DNA of 64,000 nucleotides from Diadema antillarum (Eukaryota). Where the stretch lies: positions 124,001 through 188,000 of the forward strand of contig NW_027271225.1 of assembly GCF_040938485.1 (NCBI RefSeq), in the 5' to 3' direction. The notes beneath the pieces are model-generated. The model saw only the letters and a program-made list of their open reading frames with translations, searched no databases and was not told the DNA's origin. Positions 15,172-63,137 of the stretch are shown piece after piece. Every line of letters starts with the position of its first letter. Position 1 is the first letter of the stretch. The position numbers and the translations under genes were made by a program.

Positions 15172-16299
15172 TATACAAAAAGCACAAATTCAAGTTTAAT
15201 AATCTTCATAGTATTTGTCACAGAATTCTCTAAATCCTTCCACAATCTTTATATGTGAGCCTTCTCTGCAGGAGTACTTGCTTCTCCATCAAACTTCTAT
15301 TTATTTGCACCATCAATCTGGGAATCTTTCTCATCGACAGATTCTAGGCAACAACAAAAAAATGCTAATTTCTTGGGACACAAAAGGATGCTTTCTGCAA
15401 TTATTACACAGAAGGAAGAAATTTGAGTTGTCTATCCCTGTCCAACCTCACACTGGAGATGATTAATTCAGCACATGTTTGAGGCTCTTTTTGAGAATAA
15501 ATACAGTTCATAATGCACAAGACAAAATAATAATGAAAAAAGCTGTCTCTCACTCTTCATCATATCAACAACAAGCAAACTTTTTTTTGCAGTCTAATGT
15601 ACCTTACGTTACATCGGAGGCCTTCAACACTGGATCTGAATACAAAACGATGCATGTATTTTAAAGTTTGGGGTGCCTGTGACATCTGCTTGGGGGACTT
15701 TGCTGCCACTGACAGTCAAAGATGAAAGATAGCCCCCATTTTACATTAATGCTTCCTTAGGAATGTGCATTTCATAAAAGATGGTCAATCAATCAACTGC
15801 AAGTTGACAGTATCATGTGAACTATGGTTGTTGTTGTTTTCGTTCTTTTTTTGAGGGGGGGGGGGGGTCTTTTAGGCCTGGAAGTTGTTCCTTGCAGCCT
15901 CCTTTCAAGCCCCTATTAGTCAGAGCTGATTTATGAAGAAAATTCTCACTTTTTTCAGTAAAATAATTCATCATTTCCTCTCCCACTCAAACTCTATCTT
16001 ATTGTGAAAGCAAAACTGAAAGTGCATGATGACTTCATGTTCGTGGTGATTTTGACAAATGGACTAAAATCAAATGAACAAAATAGTAAAAGTTTCAATA
16101 AAATCAGTCATGAAGTTAAAAAAGACTATTGTATTTGTAATGATCATAAATTTTCATGGACCTGTAGCATTTGTCCTCACCATATATAATGAAAAGCACA
16201 TAAAGAGATGATATCTCTGACTCCATGTCTCCCATCAGTCCACACACAAATGCAAGTAAATTTGGGGACTTTTCCTACTACACCGTATGTGTTTGAATA

Positions 16300-28614: not shown

Positions 28615-30022
28615 ACCATCATTGATGAAGACATCCTATATCAAGCATTATGCTGATAAAAACCTTTCACCTTTCTACCCTGTAAAGATCTGAATTAAAG
28701 TCTATAGGGCACAAGCTGGATCATCTCAATGAGACCATGGACCTACTGTAGGTCCATGGTGAGACGTAGGCCATACATGGCATCAGATGGGTGTTGTCTC
28801 TCTGATGTGAAACAGATTCTTAGCTCTGTATCATAATCTCCTACTCTTTCACTAGCTGAAAAATAGCCACGGAAACAGATCCAAACTCCACACCAGAGCA
28901 TGTTATCACAACGCCTTTCCTTACAGAGCAAACAACATCTCCCTCCTTGTTTCACGTCCCTTCTCATATTGGTAAAATATGACTGTGATTTACAAGAGGG
29001 ATGGCAAGTCTTCGCCCGCTCTCCCCAATTCTCAGGAGTTTCATCCACCCTTAGTCTAAATTCAGTTATCAATTTATCACTTACAATCGGCATGACTGCA
29101 TGTGGCAGTATCATGGTTGAAAAAAAAAAAAAACTGAATAAAAGCACTTACCCTCTCAAAGGAAGACACTGGGGAAAAAAGTCTTAAATAACAAGTATTT
29201 CTCAACCTTTAAATCATTGTCACAAAATCCATAAACTCTATACTTGTATTACACAGAGTCACAGCCATTTCATGACGAAATAAGCCTTGCATAAAGGCTA
29301 CTGGTAAGACAGGGACGCAGCTTCTTCTTTTTGCATTCTTGTTCTGTATTTTGTTTCATATTTTGGTCAGTATCAAGAGTCTGAACAAATACTTTCCTAC
29401 CAGTCTACAGATACGACAGGATTTTATAAGAATCCCTGTTCATGTTCCTACATATTATTTGACTTTTTGCACAAAGCAAGTCATTTATTCTTTGTTCAAA
29501 ATTTAAAAACTTGAACATAGATAGCATGTAGTTACTCCAGTGATCAATGGCTTTTAATTCTCTCATAGAATCAGTACCTCAGGTACATGAGAGTATGACA
29601 TCAATGATTTGTTGTTACGCTCATAAGTTAGTAAAGAAGGCAACAGTTTTGAAGAAAAATGTACTCATCCCATAACTGAAAAAAAAAAAATTCTACCTAG
29701 TGTTTTACTACATTGCGATACTGTACTTGAGTGTATGACTCACACATCTGAGTGATTCTAAAATCTTTCACGCTAACCTATCATTTGGCTTGCTGAGGAA
29801 GAAATGAAAGCATGTATACGGATCTGAAATTCCTTCATGACTAGATAGAGTTTTATTTTGATTAGGCACAAACTGCAACCAAAACAAGCAGTGTTGCCAT
29901 CCATAAGATTATATTGCTTGGCGTAGGTATCCACTTTCCTACTCAAAGATTTTTTCAAAAAAGAGCACTTGCCAGGCAGACAATCTGTATGTTTGGACTT
30001 ATTACGAACAAACAATGGTGCA

Positions 30023-30059
30023 CAGTGGCGGATCCATGCGGGGGCACACCGGGCACCCC

Positions 30060-30095
<36 letters not shown>

Positions 30096-30210
30096 GGGGG
30101 GGGGGGGTTAAAACAAAAGAAATAAAAAGAGAAAATGGGGGAGCATGCACCCCCCCCCCCCCCTTTAATTTTGTAAAGCCCCCTTTACAGAATTCCTGGA
30201 TCCACCCCTG
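30023..30210. mobile_element. GCGGATCC short MITE (hAT-like CAG ends, 5-bp TSD gtgca/gtaca)
   Basis: CAGTGGCGGATCC...GGATCCACCCCTG with poly-C/T/G core. Confidence 0.7.
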
Positions 30211-31377
30211 GTACATACATGGAGAATACAGAGTAGTGCCATCACGTATGGCATGAATGATCTGAAGCTAAATGTACATACAGTCAAACTCGGATACCTC
30301 GACGTCGGATAAGCCGAATATCACTTACCTCGGGGGCAAAATGAAAGTCCCGATTGTTCCTATGGAGCTTCCGTGTATTAAAAGTCGCGTAGCTCAAAAA
30401 AGATAACTCGAAGTTCGGTTACCTCGAAGGGAAATCTACTGTCCCGATCTTAATTAACTTATTGTTTTTCCCCAGCATGTTGCTCGAATCGAAATTGCAA
30501 ACATCACTCAGCATCTCCGATTAAGCGCGCGTGGACAGCGAAGACATGTCACAAATGTTTTTACCCTCGATTGTAAATATTCTGAGACCAGAACAATCGC
30601 GCGACCAATTAAGAAATACCCGATACACAGCTGACAAGAAAAATCCCCAACACCTACCAACACACGTACATGGTATGCACATAGCACCCGTGCCAATGGA
30701 GTGCTTACGATAGCACTACGCGCTGCCCCATCATCTGCTTTTCTCTAACCACTGTGTTCTGATTTTTGATCGAGATATACCCATACCGTGCGCGTAGATT
30801 TCTCAACCGTCGTGGCGCACCTGCTTACGTTGACAGTTATATCTTTGCCATTAATCACGCTCCACTGTCAAAACATCAATCTCCGGCATAGTGCCTTTTT
30901 TTAAAACTTGTTTTTTTTTGCCTTTCACGAAGTTTGTTTCATTTATTCTTCCCCGAGAACGCAAGCGCTGAAACTTTTTTTTTTCAGCAATGCGATTATC
31001 AAAATCTGGAAGTATACGCCGATCACAATGAAGAATAGAATACACAGGGCTCCGCACTAACTTTTATCGGGCCACCAATATCATTGATTTTTATTTTCTG
31101 GTGGTCGAAAGTAAAATCTGGTGACACAAAAAAAAAAAAAATCAGGAAAAACATTAGAAAAACTAAATCGGTCCTACTAAACATAGAAAAATCATTGAAG
31201 TGATACAGATGCCCATGTCTAAAACAAATGAATAGAAAATTCAATCATCTCACTCTGTGTTTTAAGATTTGACAAATAGGCGTAGAGATTATTATAAAAG
31301 TTGATGCCTATATATTTAGGAGGTCAAAACATACGTTTGAAATGAGAAAATGGGAGCATTTGCTGACATTTGTTAGC

Positions 31378-48377: not shown

Positions 48378-48691
48378 AAACACATGACTTTCCGGAGATC
48401 CCCGACCCCCGATTCTTTCGGTCGAAGTTGGGATGGGATCGGGCTGGGGTGGAGGACCCTTGGACCAGGTCTCAGCCACCATGCCCCCCCCCCCCCCCCA
48501 CACACACACACTAGACACACATACTCGCACACCAAAAAGCCTTCCGCGGCCCCTGAAGATCACACCAAGTTAATTAAAGGGAATGATGAAGATTAAATTG
48601 ATACGCCGTTCACATATCAAGTAAGTTATTGATCAGGTTAACGGGTGATGAAAGATGACTACAAGGTTGTATTACCCCGACATACCCGTGG

Positions 48692-48855
48692 NNNNNNNNN
48701 NNNNNNNNNNNNNNNNNNNNNNNNNNNNNNNNNNNNNNNNNNNNNNNNNNNNNNNNNNNNNNNNNNNNNNNNNNNNNNNNNNNNNNNNNNNNNNNNNNNN
48801 NNNNNNNNNNNNNNNNNNNNNNNNNNNNNNNNNNNNNNNNNNNNNNNNNNNNNNN
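48692..48855. other. Assembly gap (N run)
   Basis: Ns in sequence. Confidence 1.
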
Positions 48856-48986
48856 TACAGATGTGTTGTGTAATTTATGAAAATGATGAAAATTTTTGAA
48901 AGTATACTACCGGTATTTTGCACTTTGTTAATGAAATTGCAGAAAGTTGATGTATTCAAAAAAAAAAATGGCATACAGAGAATAAA

Positions 48987-49042: not shown

Positions 49043-49542
49043 AATACTGAAGATGATTATGAAATGGAAGTCAGGAAACAGCGTTATCAGTCGCAATGAC
49101 GCTACTATCCACAGTTATGTATAGCTTTACATGATTTTTGTATCCATTTGGTTTGGTCATGAAAAAGATATTTTTTTGTTTTATTTAAAACAACTCCTCC
49201 TTTTAAGTCCTTAATTACAACTCAGACATTATTTCATGTCAATCATTCAATAAGATTTTGTTCTTTGTGATTTCAACTCAAAAGGTACATACATTTAAGA
49301 TATTATGTGAAAATAAGTGGAAGATGTGCGATGCAATTTCGATAAAACCATTTTAGCATGTTTGCTTCCTATAATCTTACGAAGTCAACTATGACCGCAT
49401 TATAATATTAAATCTTTGAGATGCAGTAGAAACTGTGAAAGAGTAGAGATATACTGTATAAAGGCAAATAACAAGGCCACGAAGGGAGAAGGAAAATGAA
49501 ATCAACAAGATGAAAGGCAGAAGTAAGAAAAAAAAAACACAC

Positions 49543-49554
49543 AAAAAAACAAAA
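49543..49554 (-). terminator. Pol III oligo-T terminator of the tRNA-Phe gene
   Basis: Minus strand reads TTTTGTTTTTTT starting 9 nt after the discriminator base. Confidence 0.65.
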
Positions 49555-49562
49555 GAATCGCA

Positions 49563-49669
49563 TGCCGAAACCCGGGACAGTTCAGAACTCATGCGAGTTC
49601 TCCGGTTGACTTCGAACCAGGGACCTTTAGATCTTCAGTCTAACGCTCTCCCAACTGAGCTATTTCGGC
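49563..49669 (-). tRNA. trnF-GAA: tRNA-Phe(GAA) gene with a 34-nt insertion (49578-49611) in the T-loop between positions 58 and 59
   Basis: Minus strand reads GCCGAAATAGCTCAGTTGGGAGAGCGTTAGACTGAAGATCTAAAGGTCCCTGGTTCGA-[AGTCAACCGGAGAACTCGCATGAGTTCTGAACTG]-TCCCGGGTTTCGGCA. Removing the bracket gives the 73-nt metazoan tRNA-Phe sequence as I recall it. Functional status is uncertain (intron-containing gene or pseudogene). Confidence 0.9.
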
Positions 49670-49688
49670 AGCTGCGCAATGTGGTGTC

Positions 49689-49701
49689 TTTATATTATAT
49701 A
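49689..49701 (-). promoter_or_regulatory. TATA-like element upstream of the tRNA-Phe gene
   Basis: TATATAATATAAA lies about 20-32 nt upstream of the tRNA 5' end, the usual TFIIIB-binding zone. Confidence 0.5.
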
Positions 49702-50728
49702 AACCTTAGAGCGTATTCCAATGCTTGTGCCAGTGCGTGCACGCGGTTGATTGTATGGTGGGTTGTATGCGTGGTGTGTGTGCGCATGTCCACACGCATA
49801 CTGCCCGTTGACTATGACATGCATAACACACACGTACAGTTACGCAATAAATGAATGCACGTGTGTATCTTATACCATGGACCTACGTACGTAGGTCCAT
49901 GCTTATAGACACACAGTTTACATAATTCACATCAGCTAGATATGGCTAGCAGGTTGTGGACCAATGACAGGGAGGAACAATAGAAGACCTGTCTTCAAGA
50001 ACTCTTAAATGATCAGTAAACCCGGTTACGTGAGCTTTCACCTGTATGTACTTTCGAATGCTGATCTACCCAAAATGTCGGTCAAGTTTGGTCAAGGGCA
50101 TTATGTGCGATTTTGTTTTAACCAGCGGACATGCGCTTCTAGCTTATGTTCTAACGCTAGAAATAATGCAGTCGCTGGCTGTACAGTCCCACATATTGTT
50201 GTGTGTGTTTGTGTGTGGGTATGTGGTGTGTGCGTTGTTTTGTTTTGCTTGTTTTTTGTAGTACAATGTAGCTAGTGGTGTCTTGTTGAATGTTCTGTAT
50301 GTTACACTCACACTGTCCGTGTATTTGCCTATCCAGGGAGGTGGGAAGCCACCTCCCTGGTGTAACTGCTTCGTGCTGTCTCAAGTGTTCATCTGAATCC
50401 GTGAATGCATGGTCACGGACCATGGCATGCATGCATCCTGCATTGTCAAAATTAAAAAGATAATAATAATAACTTGCAACCTAGATAGCAAGAGCAACAA
50501 ATCTATCTAAAGAAAAAATAAAAAATAAAATGAAATAAACCTAGATCTACATGTATTAGCCTAGTCTCGTCGGGTTCTAGGTCTACCACTAGAGTCTAGA
50601 GTAATCTCAAACTAAAAGGCAATCTCAAAATGAGGGCATCCTTCAAACGTTAAATTGATAAGAATTATGTAGAAGAAGAATACAACATTTAAAAACTGGA
50701 AACAAAGTACATGTATGTAGAAGTCTAT

Positions 50729-51998: not shown

Positions 51999-54636
51999 AA
52001 CTCTTTATTATGTCACAAAAAGCTTTTACCTGGACTCAAATGACATACAACAGAATACATGCAGTAGGCCCAAGTAGAAGGTAACTATGATGTGTACAGT
52101 TCATCCCATGCAGAAACCCATAAGGCTTTATTTTTTGAAAGTGCTACATAAAGAAGAGTATGAAGTTGCATATAAAATCTAGCATGCAGCTGACACAAAT
52201 AAGACTCATACAACTGTATATGGCCATATCAAGAAAACAAAGTCTTCAAACTGCCCATTTATCTGAATTTGTTCGAAGGCTCTACACTCTTACGTACATC
52301 ACATTTATTTACATGTCAATAAAATCAGATATGATCCAATGAACTACATGTACATTGTAATTCAAATCTTCAGCTAAATCAAATGCCATTACCAATAAAC
52401 AAAGACATAATTTTATGCTGTATAAAACTTGGCACAATGAGAGTGCAAGGCAGCCTTACTGTTCCTATGAAACAGCATGACTTTCATAGACTGAAAGACT
52501 TTGGCATCCATGTTTGGAGTAACTCCATCAGCAATTTCATATTTTTAATTAGTGAGAAAGCGAATTCTACAATTAAAAAAATATATGTATACATGTAATA
52601 ACCTGGTATACATGAAAGTGTTTCAGTGGTGGTCATCTCTTATAGCGAGCCCATTCGCAGATTTTTGTATGTCTCTGACACTGATATATGAGTAACATTT
52701 AATCTACCGAGTACAGGCAGAGTTTGCAGGTAGGCCTTACTGAGGACTTCAACACACATTGTTTGTCCCATTGCGAGCACAGCTACCGTAACCACAGCTA
52801 CACATTAACACAAATTTTGTCATCTCCTAAGAGCATACACACGGACCCACACTGCAACGGCGAATGTTTTGGCAAAAATTGAAAGTGACCATTTCAACTA
52901 TTAAATCTACAAAGCATATATGTAGATTTTGAGTCAAACTGCATTTAAATGTACCATGCTGAGTACTGGGTTATCCATACTGGGTTATGTATGTCCCTCT
53001 TTCTAATCCTGTTTCTAATACAATCACATGATTAAAATTCTTTCCTTCCAACACCTTGCTATAAAATGGAATGACATGAAAACGCTCAAGGCACGTTTTT
53101 TTTTTTTTAAGAAACGTTCATTAACCTCATACCAAAGCACCTTCCATTGCTCTTAATCTATTTTCTGTACATCAACACCCTTTAAACAATTTGATCTTTT
53201 AAAGTACATTGTAATAGCCACGGATGGCACACGGAGCAGCATTCATCCTTTTTTTATTACAATATAAAACCAGGTACTTGAACAATGTTATTAAAGCTTT
53301 TTTTTTTTTACAATTGTAATACAATTGTAAACTGTGGATAATGTCAGTGCAGCACCCATACTTAGTTAGAATCGCATTGACCTTTACATCAGTAGCCTCG
53401 CCATTTTTTCTTTTCTAATCCAGCCACAAAAAAACAAAAAAAAACAACAAAAATACATTAAAAATGTTTCCGTCGAAATAGTTTAAAACTTCTCTTTTTA
53501 TGAATACTGTTCTTTCACCCTATAAATTCAATGTGTTCAAAAACAGTCATACAGTAAGGAATAGGTACAATACTGAGTAGGCCTACTAAGTAACCTGTGG
53601 GTAGTTTATTCAAGATTATAGCATTAGCTGCCATATCAAGTGCTGGATTCTATGATATCTGATATCAGTCCACATAATGACATTTGAGGGATAGTTTCAT
53701 TAACAAAATCACAACAATGCTTGACAGCATCCATACATTCTATACCATCCAGCTATTCCTATAATACACAAATTCAGATTTATAAACAACAAAACCAGTT
53801 AATATTACTGTAATGTGCGAACATGGCTAAAGGACATGTTGGGTTTTCTATCACATGTACGTTTCTGGAGATCATTCCGGTCTAATATTTTACTACTATG
53901 AATAAATTTGTGATGGGGAATAATATTATCGAGGGAAGTGTGATTACAAGCCTTGCTATTACATTGTACATACTATTTCTTACGGAAGTAAAAGGTGAAC
54001 AGAACGTTTGCAAACAGAGCATCCTGTCGCACCATCCTGAGTATTTTGTTGTGATACACGAAATTTTCAAGTTTTCGGTTTTCTAAAGTAAGCAGCTCAT
54101 AAAAGCTGGGATATTTTCTTTCGACGCCCATGACGACAACGGACCAATAAAGACTATTATGTAGGTAGATGAGACATCACTGACCAATTTCGAAAATATT
54201 TGGCAAGAGTCGAGTTGTGTTTGATAAATGCAATTACATGTATCATGCCAATGAAAACCCTTTAATGGAAGATGAGGTATAGACCGTGAATGTTGAAATG
54301 TACGATACAATTACAAACCAGCCTTAGGATGTACTGCAAAAATCACCCGTGTTAATTGTACGTTGTAGTTGGAAGCGGATGCTTTGCTATGACTTTTAAT
54401 ACTTGGGTTATTCACCTCTTTATTTGGAATATTCAATCTCTCAGTTGTGAGAATGTCAGTGGGATTTGGTACATTTGTGAAATTTGGCAATGTGGTCAGA
54501 GTTCAAAGTTACGACAATAATTGTTAGTCAAAATATTTTCCGTACCATGGCTTCTTGACCCGCTGTATTTCGACATCGAAGTTACAAAATACAAATTGTA
54601 TCTCTAAATTACACAGATCAAACCCATTATACTCCA

Positions 54637-54774
54637 CAGGGGCGGATCCAGGGAGGACCGCAACCAGCGCACGCCCCCCCCCCTTATTTTTTGTTGAAAC
54701 AAAAGAAATAAAAAGAAAAAATGGGGGAGGGGTGCGTGCGCCCCCTCTATACGGAACTCCTGGATCCACCCCTG
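54637..54774. mobile_element. GCGGATCC short MITE (perfect 5-bp TSD CTCCA)
   Basis: ctcca|CAGGGGCGGATCC...GGATCCACCCCTG|ctcca. Confidence 0.75.
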
Positions 54775-55069
54775 CTCCATGTTCGTAGATAATGTTGCCA
54801 ATGACACCAAACAAACGAGATGACAGTCAAACCAGATATAGTGTCCACATTTCAAGAATATTACTGGTAAAGATAGGAAAAACACGTAACATTTCGTAAG
54901 AGCGCGTAATACAAGCCTTTGACAGAATAATGTAATACCTTCAAATCCATTTTCATTCATCGTCATCATCATCAATATCGATAATCATGTAAGTGGCAAT
55001 ACAGATCCGTTCCATGCTCACTGATGCTTGCGACAAGTTACAAATGATTTTTTTTTTACTTATTTTCTA

Positions 55070-61898: not shown

Positions 61899-62043
61899 CA
61901 GGGGCGGATCCACGATTCCGTAAAGAGGGGGCGCGTTTACAAAATTCCCCCATTTTTTCTTTTTATTTCTTTTGTTTCAACAAAAAATAAAGAGGGGGGG
62001 GGGGGGCGTGCGCCGGTTGCGGTCCTCCCTGGATCCGCCACTG
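61899..62043. mobile_element. GCGGATCC short MITE in an ENPP intron (TSD ttaaa/ctaaa)
   Basis: CAGGGGCGGATCC...GGATCCGCCACTG; inverted relative of 54637-54774. Confidence 0.75.
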
Positions 62044-62208
62044 CTAAATGTCTTTCTGGTGGGACTATACAGTACACTTTCATGGTATGATGATAAATTT
62101 GGTGTTTATCGTGAATAGTACATAGTAAATGATAAACTAGATAACTCTTGAAGTGAATTGCTAATAAAGCTTAACTGTTTGAGTGTAATATGTTTATCAA
62201 GTTCTTAC

Positions 62209-62574: not shown

Positions 62575-62746
62575 NNNNNNNNNNNNNNNNNNNNNNNNNN
62601 NNNNNNNNNNNNNNNNNNNNNNNNNNNNNNNNNNNNNNNNNNNNNNNNNNNNNNNNNNNNNNNNNNNNNNNNNNNNNNNNNNNNNNNNNNNNNNNNNNNN
62701 NNNNNNNNNNNNNNNNNNNNNNNNNNNNNNNNNNNNNNNNNNNNNN
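62575..62746. other. Assembly gap (N run) within an ENPP intron
   Basis: Ns in sequence. Confidence 1.
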
Positions 62747-63137
62747 AAATATTTCTGTCTTTCATATAAATGCTCTGGATCGAATATATGAAATATGCAG
62801 TAATCGAATCAAAATAGATATTAAACCATAAATTATAAACGTAGTGCGAAATTAGAACCAATCACTATTTTTTTTTCTTATCATGGCTACAACTGAAAGC
62901 ACTGAATAATCGGTGATTATTTTGATAGGCAGATGAAGTTCAAATTCGTCAAATCAGTTGTCATAGGCACATTTTGTTGAAAATGATATATCCCATGCCT
63001 AAGGGGGAATTACTAGTACTACACTGAATATTTATTTTATCTATATTATACCCTACGTTCAAAGCCCCCTCCCGCTCTTCAAAATCACAATAGTCGCCTG
63101 CTAATCATAATGCATTTCGACAGACAGGGAGAAGAAA

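Follow-up and report, generated by a model that had tools for sequence, protein, structure and literature searches.

A candidate T-loop intron in tRNA-Phe(GAA) genes of Diadema antillarum and stony corals

The window, a 64-kb stretch of Diadema antillarum DNA, carries a tRNA-Phe(GAA) gene on its minus strand, running from 49669 to 49563. The gene is split in the T-loop by a 34-nt insert, and the element with its insert is 107 nt long (Table 1). The insert lies between positions 58 and 59, not at 37/38, and the anticodon loop, CUGAAGA, is uninterrupted. All invariant tRNA positions are intact in this insert-bearing gene. The junction contexts are GA/A and UG/U, where the slash marks the junction. 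As the first-pass annotation had held, the insert cannot be shifted, and the junction in the window gene is unambiguous. The junctions of the coral genes described below can slide by 2 to 3 nt on an AA repeat, which leaves the product unchanged. The insert was found once in the 64-kb window, where 0 matches are expected by chance.

Table 1. Features of the split tRNA-Phe(GAA) gene and its surroundings (window positions)
Feature	Position	Strand	Description
5' exon	49612..49669	-	tRNA positions 1-58; acceptor 5' strand, D arm (A box), anticodon arm (GAA), variable loop, T-stem 5' strand, and T-loop U54-A58, with G53-U54-U55-C56-G57-A58 before the insert; Rfam tRNA match; belongs to the cloverleaf that ARAGORN calls once the insert is cut out in silico
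Insert (candidate intron)	49578..49611	-	34 nt, between A58 and U59
3' exon	49563..49577	-	U59, C60, T-stem 3' strand, acceptor 3' strand, discriminator A73
CCGG element	49602..49605	-	5' part of the insert; can pair with C50-G53 as a surrogate T-arm
Hairpin	49584..49601	-	perfect 7 bp, AGAACUC / GCAU / GAGUUCU
GAAC	49580..49583	-	can pair with exon G53-U54-U55-C56; central 4-bp helix of the BHB-like model
UG	49578..49579	-	last two nucleotides of the insert; 3' junction bulge, followed by U59
B-box-like GGTTCGAAGTC	49608..49618	-	exon G52-A58 plus the first four insert nucleotides
TATA-like A/T run	49688..49703	-	about 20-35 nt upstream of position 1; by sequence reading
T4 (49554-49551) and T7 (49549-49543)	49543..49554	-	9-20 nt past A73; probable terminators for RNA polymerase III

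When 49578-49611 is excised in silico, ARAGORN calls the remaining 73-nt sequence a regular tRNA-Phe(GAA) cloverleaf. This result agrees with the earlier statement that the two halves match a canonical tRNA-Phe. ARAGORN reported no tRNA in the whole window, and the uncut element likewise gave none. The Rfam tRNA model matches only 49662-49601, with 30.4 bits against a gathering score of 29, and in this match CCGGA from the insert stands in for a T-stem strand. A second tRNA with the insert as its acceptor strand was considered and rejected, because the pairing fails. A miRNA-like hairpin was also rejected, because a stem of 7 bp is too short.

The A box of the window gene is intact. The B-box-like sequence, GGTTCGAAGTC, spans the 5' junction and agrees with the usual B-box consensus, GGTTCGANTCC, at 9 of 11 positions. 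In the coral copies, the start of the insert completes a consensus-like B box, GGTTCAAATCC. The first-pass annotation had described the B box as partly retained, which holds for the window at 9 of 11 positions and is joined by the consensus-like match in corals. Judging from these matches, a split B box rebuilt by the insert would let TFIIIC bind. The TATA-like box upstream and the oligo-T terminator downstream, both noted earlier, are also found on reading the sequence. A run of at least four T lies within about 15 nt downstream in nearly all coral copies with intact exons.

An exact 24-mer of the insert core led us to three metagenome contigs (L001-L003). All three matches fall inside a 30-nt insert that splits the T-loop of a tRNA-Phe(GAA) gene at the same site. 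One of these contigs comes from analysis project Ga0126343, a Cyphastrea sp. coral metagenome (bioRxiv 10.1101/391565). It carries an animal homeobox exon 2.5 kb upstream of the tRNA-Phe, a second complete insert-bearing tRNA-Phe whose insert has diverged, and the start of a third at the contig end. Homologs of the homeobox exon led to two long contigs from other assemblies, L006 (95 % protein identity) and L007 (88 %), the second of which is extended by L013. Downstream of the homeobox gene, there are 8 clear tRNA-Phe copies and 2 remnants on L006 and about 15 copies on L007/L013. Across the L006 and L007/L013 arrays, the insert is present in all but two copies. Insert-bearing genes were found on the coral contigs L001-L003, L006, L007, and L013.

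The arrays (L006 13003-19659, and L007 12534-19848 with L013 8247-8350) have a unit spacing of about 300 to 1900 bp. Two homeobox genes stand in tandem on L006 and on L007, and the array lies 2 to 3 kb downstream of the second one. The arrays show birth and death of copies, as intact copies stand beside others in which U33, the T-stem, or the D-stem is mutated or internal parts are deleted. In the downstream DNA available beside the more distant homeobox homologs (L008, L009, L010-L012, and L014-L021, of which L018-L021 are Tara coral metagenome scaffolds), we found no tRNA-Phe arrays. Since several of these homologs (L008, L009, and L018-L021) lack tRNA-Phe in that DNA, the array is not syntenic in all corals sampled. 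Either the array is syntenic in the closest corals only, or the distant contigs are too short, as far as their sequence can tell.

We then looked for the window sequence in a k-mer index of sequencing runs. Two DNA runs of the window organism, from separate studies, one of which may be the sample behind the window assembly, contain 0.72 and 0.71 of the words sampled from 49300-49900. For six other organism labels (B, C, D, E, F, and H), the runs contain 0.14 of the same stretch, or 8 of 58 sampled words. The 107-nt element fully encloses 77 words, which amount to 13.5 % of this stretch, whereas the canonical 5' exon alone would give about 5 %. In 49545-49625, where nearly every 31-mer overlaps the insert, runs under five labels (B, C, D, E, and H) hold 3 of 5 sampled words, and the two absent words are about what is expected for words that reach into the trailer. 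From the word shares of both stretches, the exact insert-bearing element seems to recur in other organisms without its flanks. Many of the runs with insert words are labelled RNA by a guess of the tool, and an RNA run can hold DNA.

The exons of the window gene differ from the coral consensus at 5 of 73 positions, and four of these differences form two compensatory pairs. From the window to the corals, pair 6-67 changes from A-U to G-C and pair 28-42 from U-A to C-G; the fifth difference is purine 57. In the insert, the window and the coral copy L001/L002 agree in all 26 nt of the core, which starts with CCGG, includes the hairpin, and ends with GAAC. These two inserts differ by a 4-nt indel in the 5' linker and in the two letters of the 3' bulge. 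No similarity was found by blastn between the flanks of the window gene and those of the coral loci.

We counted differences from the consensus in the 20 insert-bearing coral copies. In these counts, which are not phylogenetically independent and in which gene conversion may inflate the similarity within an array, the exons show 1.6 % differences per site and the whole insert shows 7.2 % (Fisher p about 1e-9 versus exons). The insert evolves 4 to 5 times faster than the exons. Within the insert, the values are 5.4 % for the hairpin stems, 18 % for the hairpin loop (p 0.0014 versus stems), 3.7 % for GAAY, and 5 % for CCGG. The end branches of the coral flanks have a median of 0.3 changes per site. 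The order of exons, paired insert parts, loop, and flanks, from slowest to fastest, fits what would be predicted for a functional gene with a structured intron. One array copy, L007 17049-17151, has a double change in the D-stem, from GCUC/GAGC to GCGC/GCGC, that keeps the pairing; it also has a C50-A64 mismatch and a weak terminator. Judged by the exon, insert, and flank rates, the compensatory pairs, and the D-stem double change, the cloverleaf is evidently under purifying selection.

Several parts of the insert have kept their sequence or their spacing. The CCGG element has an invariant final GG and a C or U at each of its first two positions in all 19 aligned copies, and such an element can pair with C50-G53 in 96 % of cells of the alignment. 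The hairpin at 49601-49584 has the perfect 7 bp ascribed to it earlier; it is identical in the window and in coral copy L001, and is paired in 93 % of cells. Every copy has GAAC or GAAU, which can pair with the exon GUUC in 97 to 100 % of cells across the 19 aligned copies. The change from GAAC to GAAU retains the pair with G53 as a wobble. The letters of the 3' bulge vary (UG, AA, UA, AG, and CA), and its length is 2 in all copies. From the hairpin through GAAY and the two bulge nucleotides to U59, every copy is free of indels. The linker on the 5' side, by contrast, is 6, 7, 10, or 11 nt long.

Three helices in the precursor can be stacked: the T-stem (49-52/62-65, with 95 % of cells paired), the G53-C56/GAAY helix, and the insert hairpin. 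Outer helices are present on both sides of the central helix, and the stack leaves two bulges on opposite strands. The junctions are R57-A58/N and N-N/U59, and at each of them two nucleotides separate the junction from the 3' end of a strand of the 4-bp helix. That G53-C56 can pair with GAAC, flanked by GA/A and UG/U, had been noted from the window sequence, and our reading concurs. The exon side of the central helix is invariant, and the helix shows wobble changes only. This GUUC/GAAC geometry is kept in every coral copy despite the differing bulge letters. A bulge-helix-bulge (BHB) is a 4-bp helix flanked by 3-nt bulges (PMC10485636, PMC3728597), and the junction offset found here agrees with it. 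However, with the T-stem in its normal register, the bulge on the 3' side measures 5 nt, and that on the 5' side measures 8 to 12 nt, so this is not a strict hBHBh' motif. The BHB cleavage geometry claimed earlier holds for the second-nucleotide junctions and fails for the bulge sizes. As modelled, the motif would be at best relaxed, or BHL-like.

The BHB-like conformer is not the minimum-energy fold; it is 1.3 to 3.6 kcal/mol less stable than a fold made of the T-stem and the hairpin. At minimum energy, C50-G53 is often paired with CYGG instead, which makes a surrogate T-arm. Both candidate folds are about 95 % paired across copies. The first-pass annotation had suggested looking for covariation that preserves GUUC/GAAC and the hairpin. 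In the alignment, no double-sided covariation was found in the insert helices for either candidate fold, and shuffles did as well as the real alignment. In the coral copies with intact exons, 5 stem changes keep a pair and 4 break one. Therefore, the predicted insert structure rests on conservation and geometry.

The insert also resembles parts of the tRNA itself. Its 5' half in corals (AUCCGG-AGAA-CUCG-CA) is similar to the 3' exon (AUCCCGG-GU-CUCGG-CA), and the same holds for 49595-49611 and 49563-49577 in the window. The 3' strand of the hairpin plus GAAY resembles the T-arm, GGUUCAAAU. Going by these likenesses, the insert may have arisen when the T-arm and 3' end were partly duplicated or folded back.

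One copy on L006, at 15475-15547, has no insert. It is a 73-nt tRNA-Phe equal to the insert-bearing consensus minus 30 nt, it has a good T run, and ARAGORN calls it tRNA-Phe. Its downstream flank is near-identical to that of the insert-bearing copy L006_17903, and its upstream flank matches L007_14662. In a tree of the flanks, it is nested among insert-bearing units (SH-aLRT 88). Because the insert is common to the window lineage, precise loss of the insert from this copy is the more parsimonious direction. The loss could have come about through a copy of spliced RNA, or by conversion from an intron-less gene. As a gene sequence, this copy would show what the mature tRNA is expected to be, and is not proof of splicing. 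Since an intron-less paralog exists, the insert-bearing genes are not proven to be needed.

On the coral contigs, ARAGORN reports only this intron-less copy and one mis-modelled copy. We rejected the second call, a 74-nt tRNA-Phe at L006 17360-17433, because it is built from a surrogate T-arm and a piece of the insert taken as the acceptor strand. It illustrates how annotation pipelines could mis-report insert-bearing loci. Because both ARAGORN and Rfam miss or mis-model the insert-bearing genes, tRNA-Phe gene counts in such genomes are probably too low.

We suggest that the window tRNA-Phe(GAA) gene is real and selectively maintained, and that its 30- to 34-nt structured insert behaves like an intron at a non-canonical position; on the sequence evidence, we hold this somewhat more probable than its contrary. 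The insert would then be a conserved non-canonical T-loop tRNA intron of animals that is spliced by the tRNA splicing endonuclease, and we give this reading a probability of about 0.55. Excision by another route would add a small share on top of it. It is about an even bet that at least two animal lineages, the stony corals and that of the window, make tRNA-Phe from genes with an old, conserved T-loop intron. The intron reading is favored because the GUUC/GAAC geometry is fixed in all coral copies and because a paralog lacks precisely the insert. A spliced intron had been one of the possibilities raised at first. Conservation, geometry, and the insert-free paralog support it, but the motif is not a strict BHB and there is no compensatory change in the intron helices. 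The recent single-copy pseudogene that had also been raised is contradicted, because the element is conserved in stony corals, is multi-copy, has its exons best kept, and has exact words in the runs of other organisms. As far as it could be checked, the first description of the locus was right in every detail.

We propose the following mechanism. RNA polymerase III would transcribe the whole unit from the A box and the insert-completed B box and stop at the T runs. The precursor would stack its T-stem (49-52/62-65), the 4-bp helix of G53-C56 with GAAY, and the 7-bp hairpin. This fold would present two bulges on opposite strands, with each junction two nucleotides beyond the 3' end of a 4-bp helix strand, a cleavage geometry of the BHB type. 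Both junctions would then be cut by the tRNA splicing endonuclease or by an enzyme that follows a like rule. Finally, an RtcB-type ligase would join A58 to U59, giving the 73-nt tRNA-Phe and a free or circular intron of 30 to 34 nt. The second-nucleotide offset is also seen at canonical introns, as derived from the anticodon-intron pair rule.

In one alternative, the insert-bearing copies are a dead tRNA-Phe family, spread by tandem duplication and gene conversion, and the real tRNA-Phe comes from intron-less genes. The many clearly decayed array members (with changes in U33, the T-stem, or the D-stem, or internal deletions), the intron-less gene within the L006 array, and the lack of covariation in the insert would be in line with this. 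However, the exons of insert-bearing copies have changed far less than the insert and the flanks. A 26-nt core is identical across lineages that show two compensatory exon pair changes and have unalignable flanks. By the word index, the 107 nt of the window gene seem to recur exactly and free of flanks in runs of six other organism labels. If intron-less genes had been the donors, conversion would have removed the insert instead of preserving it, and the species of L007/L013 has about 15 copies in a 21-kb stretch, none of them intron-less. We therefore regard a dead family as unlikely.

Alternatively, as the first-pass annotation had also allowed, the insert could be retained in a stable tRNA-like RNA of 103 to 107 nt, with an extra hairpin protruding from the T-loop, that serves translation or another role. 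Positions 59-60 bulge out of the T-loop motif in known tRNA structures, so the topology would allow an insertion after A58. The CYGG element could form a surrogate T-arm, with a perfect 7-nt loop in corals, and an abundant RNA would more easily explain why insert words occur in many presumed RNA runs. Against this, the insert changes 4 to 5 times faster than the exons, and a paralog without the insert has the exact junction. Contacts with the D-loop, RNase P, the CCA-adding enzyme, and the ribosome all depend on the tRNA elbow. We found no natural tRNA with a T-loop insertion in the literature searched. Retention of the insert is a shade more doubtful still than a dead family. If the insert were retained, the tRNA shape would be unprecedented.

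It is also rather improbable that the insert is removed without the tRNA splicing endonuclease (TSEN), either by another endonuclease and a ligase or by stepwise trimming guided by the surrogate T-arm. The oversized bulges and the unfavorable energy of the BHB-like conformer would speak for such a route, and so would the conserved CYGG-AG, a loop segment in the BHB model. Animal TSEN is also reportedly restricted to 37/38 (PMC10485636). On the other hand, both junctions lie two nucleotides past the 4-bp helix, and this symmetric offset is just what the endonuclease rule prescribes. We know of no alternative pathway that joins tRNA exons in animals. Lastly, an assembly or sequencing artefact in the window is extremely improbable, and the insert can be taken as real, because about 0.7 of the words in the 601-nt stretch are present in each of two DNA runs that separate studies made of the organism, and independent coral assemblies and metagenomes have the same architecture.

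The proposed T-loop intron differs from what is described for animals. According to a review, the four-subunit animal endonuclease removes introns only at 37/38, because it measures from the folded tRNA body (PMC10485636). In the literature searched, we found no description of an animal T-loop tRNA intron or of this insert. To our knowledge, animal tRNA-Phe normally has no intron. Like the metazoan introns at 37/38 that give rise to tricRNAs (PMC6614914), the insert would presumably be handled by TSEN and RtcB, could form an exon-intron helix beside the 3' junction, comparable to the anticodon-intron pair, and, as a short structured intron, could be circularized. Unlike those introns, it sits in the T-loop, where it destroys the elbow that is thought to be the ruler of the animal enzyme.

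The closest precedent for the T-loop insert is Cyanidioschyzon merolae. This red alga has ectopic nuclear tRNA introns outside the anticodon loop, including one in the T-loop of Ile(UAU) at 53/54 (PMC3728597). Its inserts are 11 to 69 nt long with strict or relaxed BHB-type junction motifs, the genes are missed by standard finders, and splicing of the ectopic introns was shown by RT-PCR (PMC3728597). As in C. merolae, a nuclear tRNA gene is here split outside the anticodon loop by a short insert and overlooked by tRNA finders. Unlike in the alga, the host is an animal, presumably with a four-subunit endonuclease, and only tRNA-Phe is seen to be affected, by a single insert with its junction at 58/59. 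The bulges are longer than 3 nt, the B box, which is dispensable in the alga, is rebuilt by the insert, and excision is deduced from the genes.

The first-pass annotation had also called the insert archaeal-type. In looks this is apt: like archaeal hBHBh' or relaxed BHB introns (PMC4090602, PMC10485636), it has a predicted central 4-bp helix, junctions after the second nucleotide, and flanking helices. However, the gene here is a eukaryotic nuclear one and lacks strict 3-nt bulges. As an origin, the term does not hold. The exact insert core had no match in 185,579 bacterial and archaeal species genomes, and there is no sign of archaeal origin, since the only two matches to a degenerate insert pattern in these genomes (L004 and L005) have no tRNA context and were set aside as chance. 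T-loop positions are among the known sites of archaeal tRNA introns. The insert had no match in viral contigs, and a gapped pattern with the window's own 3' exon had none in metagenome contigs.

The insert-bearing genes share some traits with tRNA pseudogenes and tRNA-derived repeats, as they are missed by standard finders and lie in arrays that include decayed copies. Unlike these, they have intact exons, compensatory changes across lineages, a conserved insert core, and terminators. In addition, neither a poly(A) tail nor a target-site duplication, as might mark a tRNA-derived repeat, was found at the window copy. A mobile element with a target-site duplication was rejected for the latter reason.

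If the T-loop intron is real, animal machinery would remove an intron far from 37/38 by way of a relaxed bulge-helix-bulge fold. Because the T-loop forms the elbow that the ruler of the endonuclease needs, this would force a second recognition mode for animals, and the gene would be a natural substrate on which to test it. A small circular RNA might be released. The class of disrupted tRNA genes would then extend from archaea and algae to Metazoa.

Some minor features lie elsewhere in the window. Matches to the mir-297 and mir-466 Rfam models at 49763-49800 were taken as chance, because they score 14 to 16 bits against gathering scores of 85 to 90 and fall in TG/CA-rich low-complexity sequence. 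Runs of N (544 in all) at about 48680-48880 and 62600-62770 are assembly gaps or masked sequence, and one of them is about 0.7 kb from the tRNA gene. Similar open reading frames (GGGG..APP..LF.SFV..K-rich) occur in at least three places, at 29773-30216, 54524-54975, and 61937-62118, and probably belong to a dispersed repeat.
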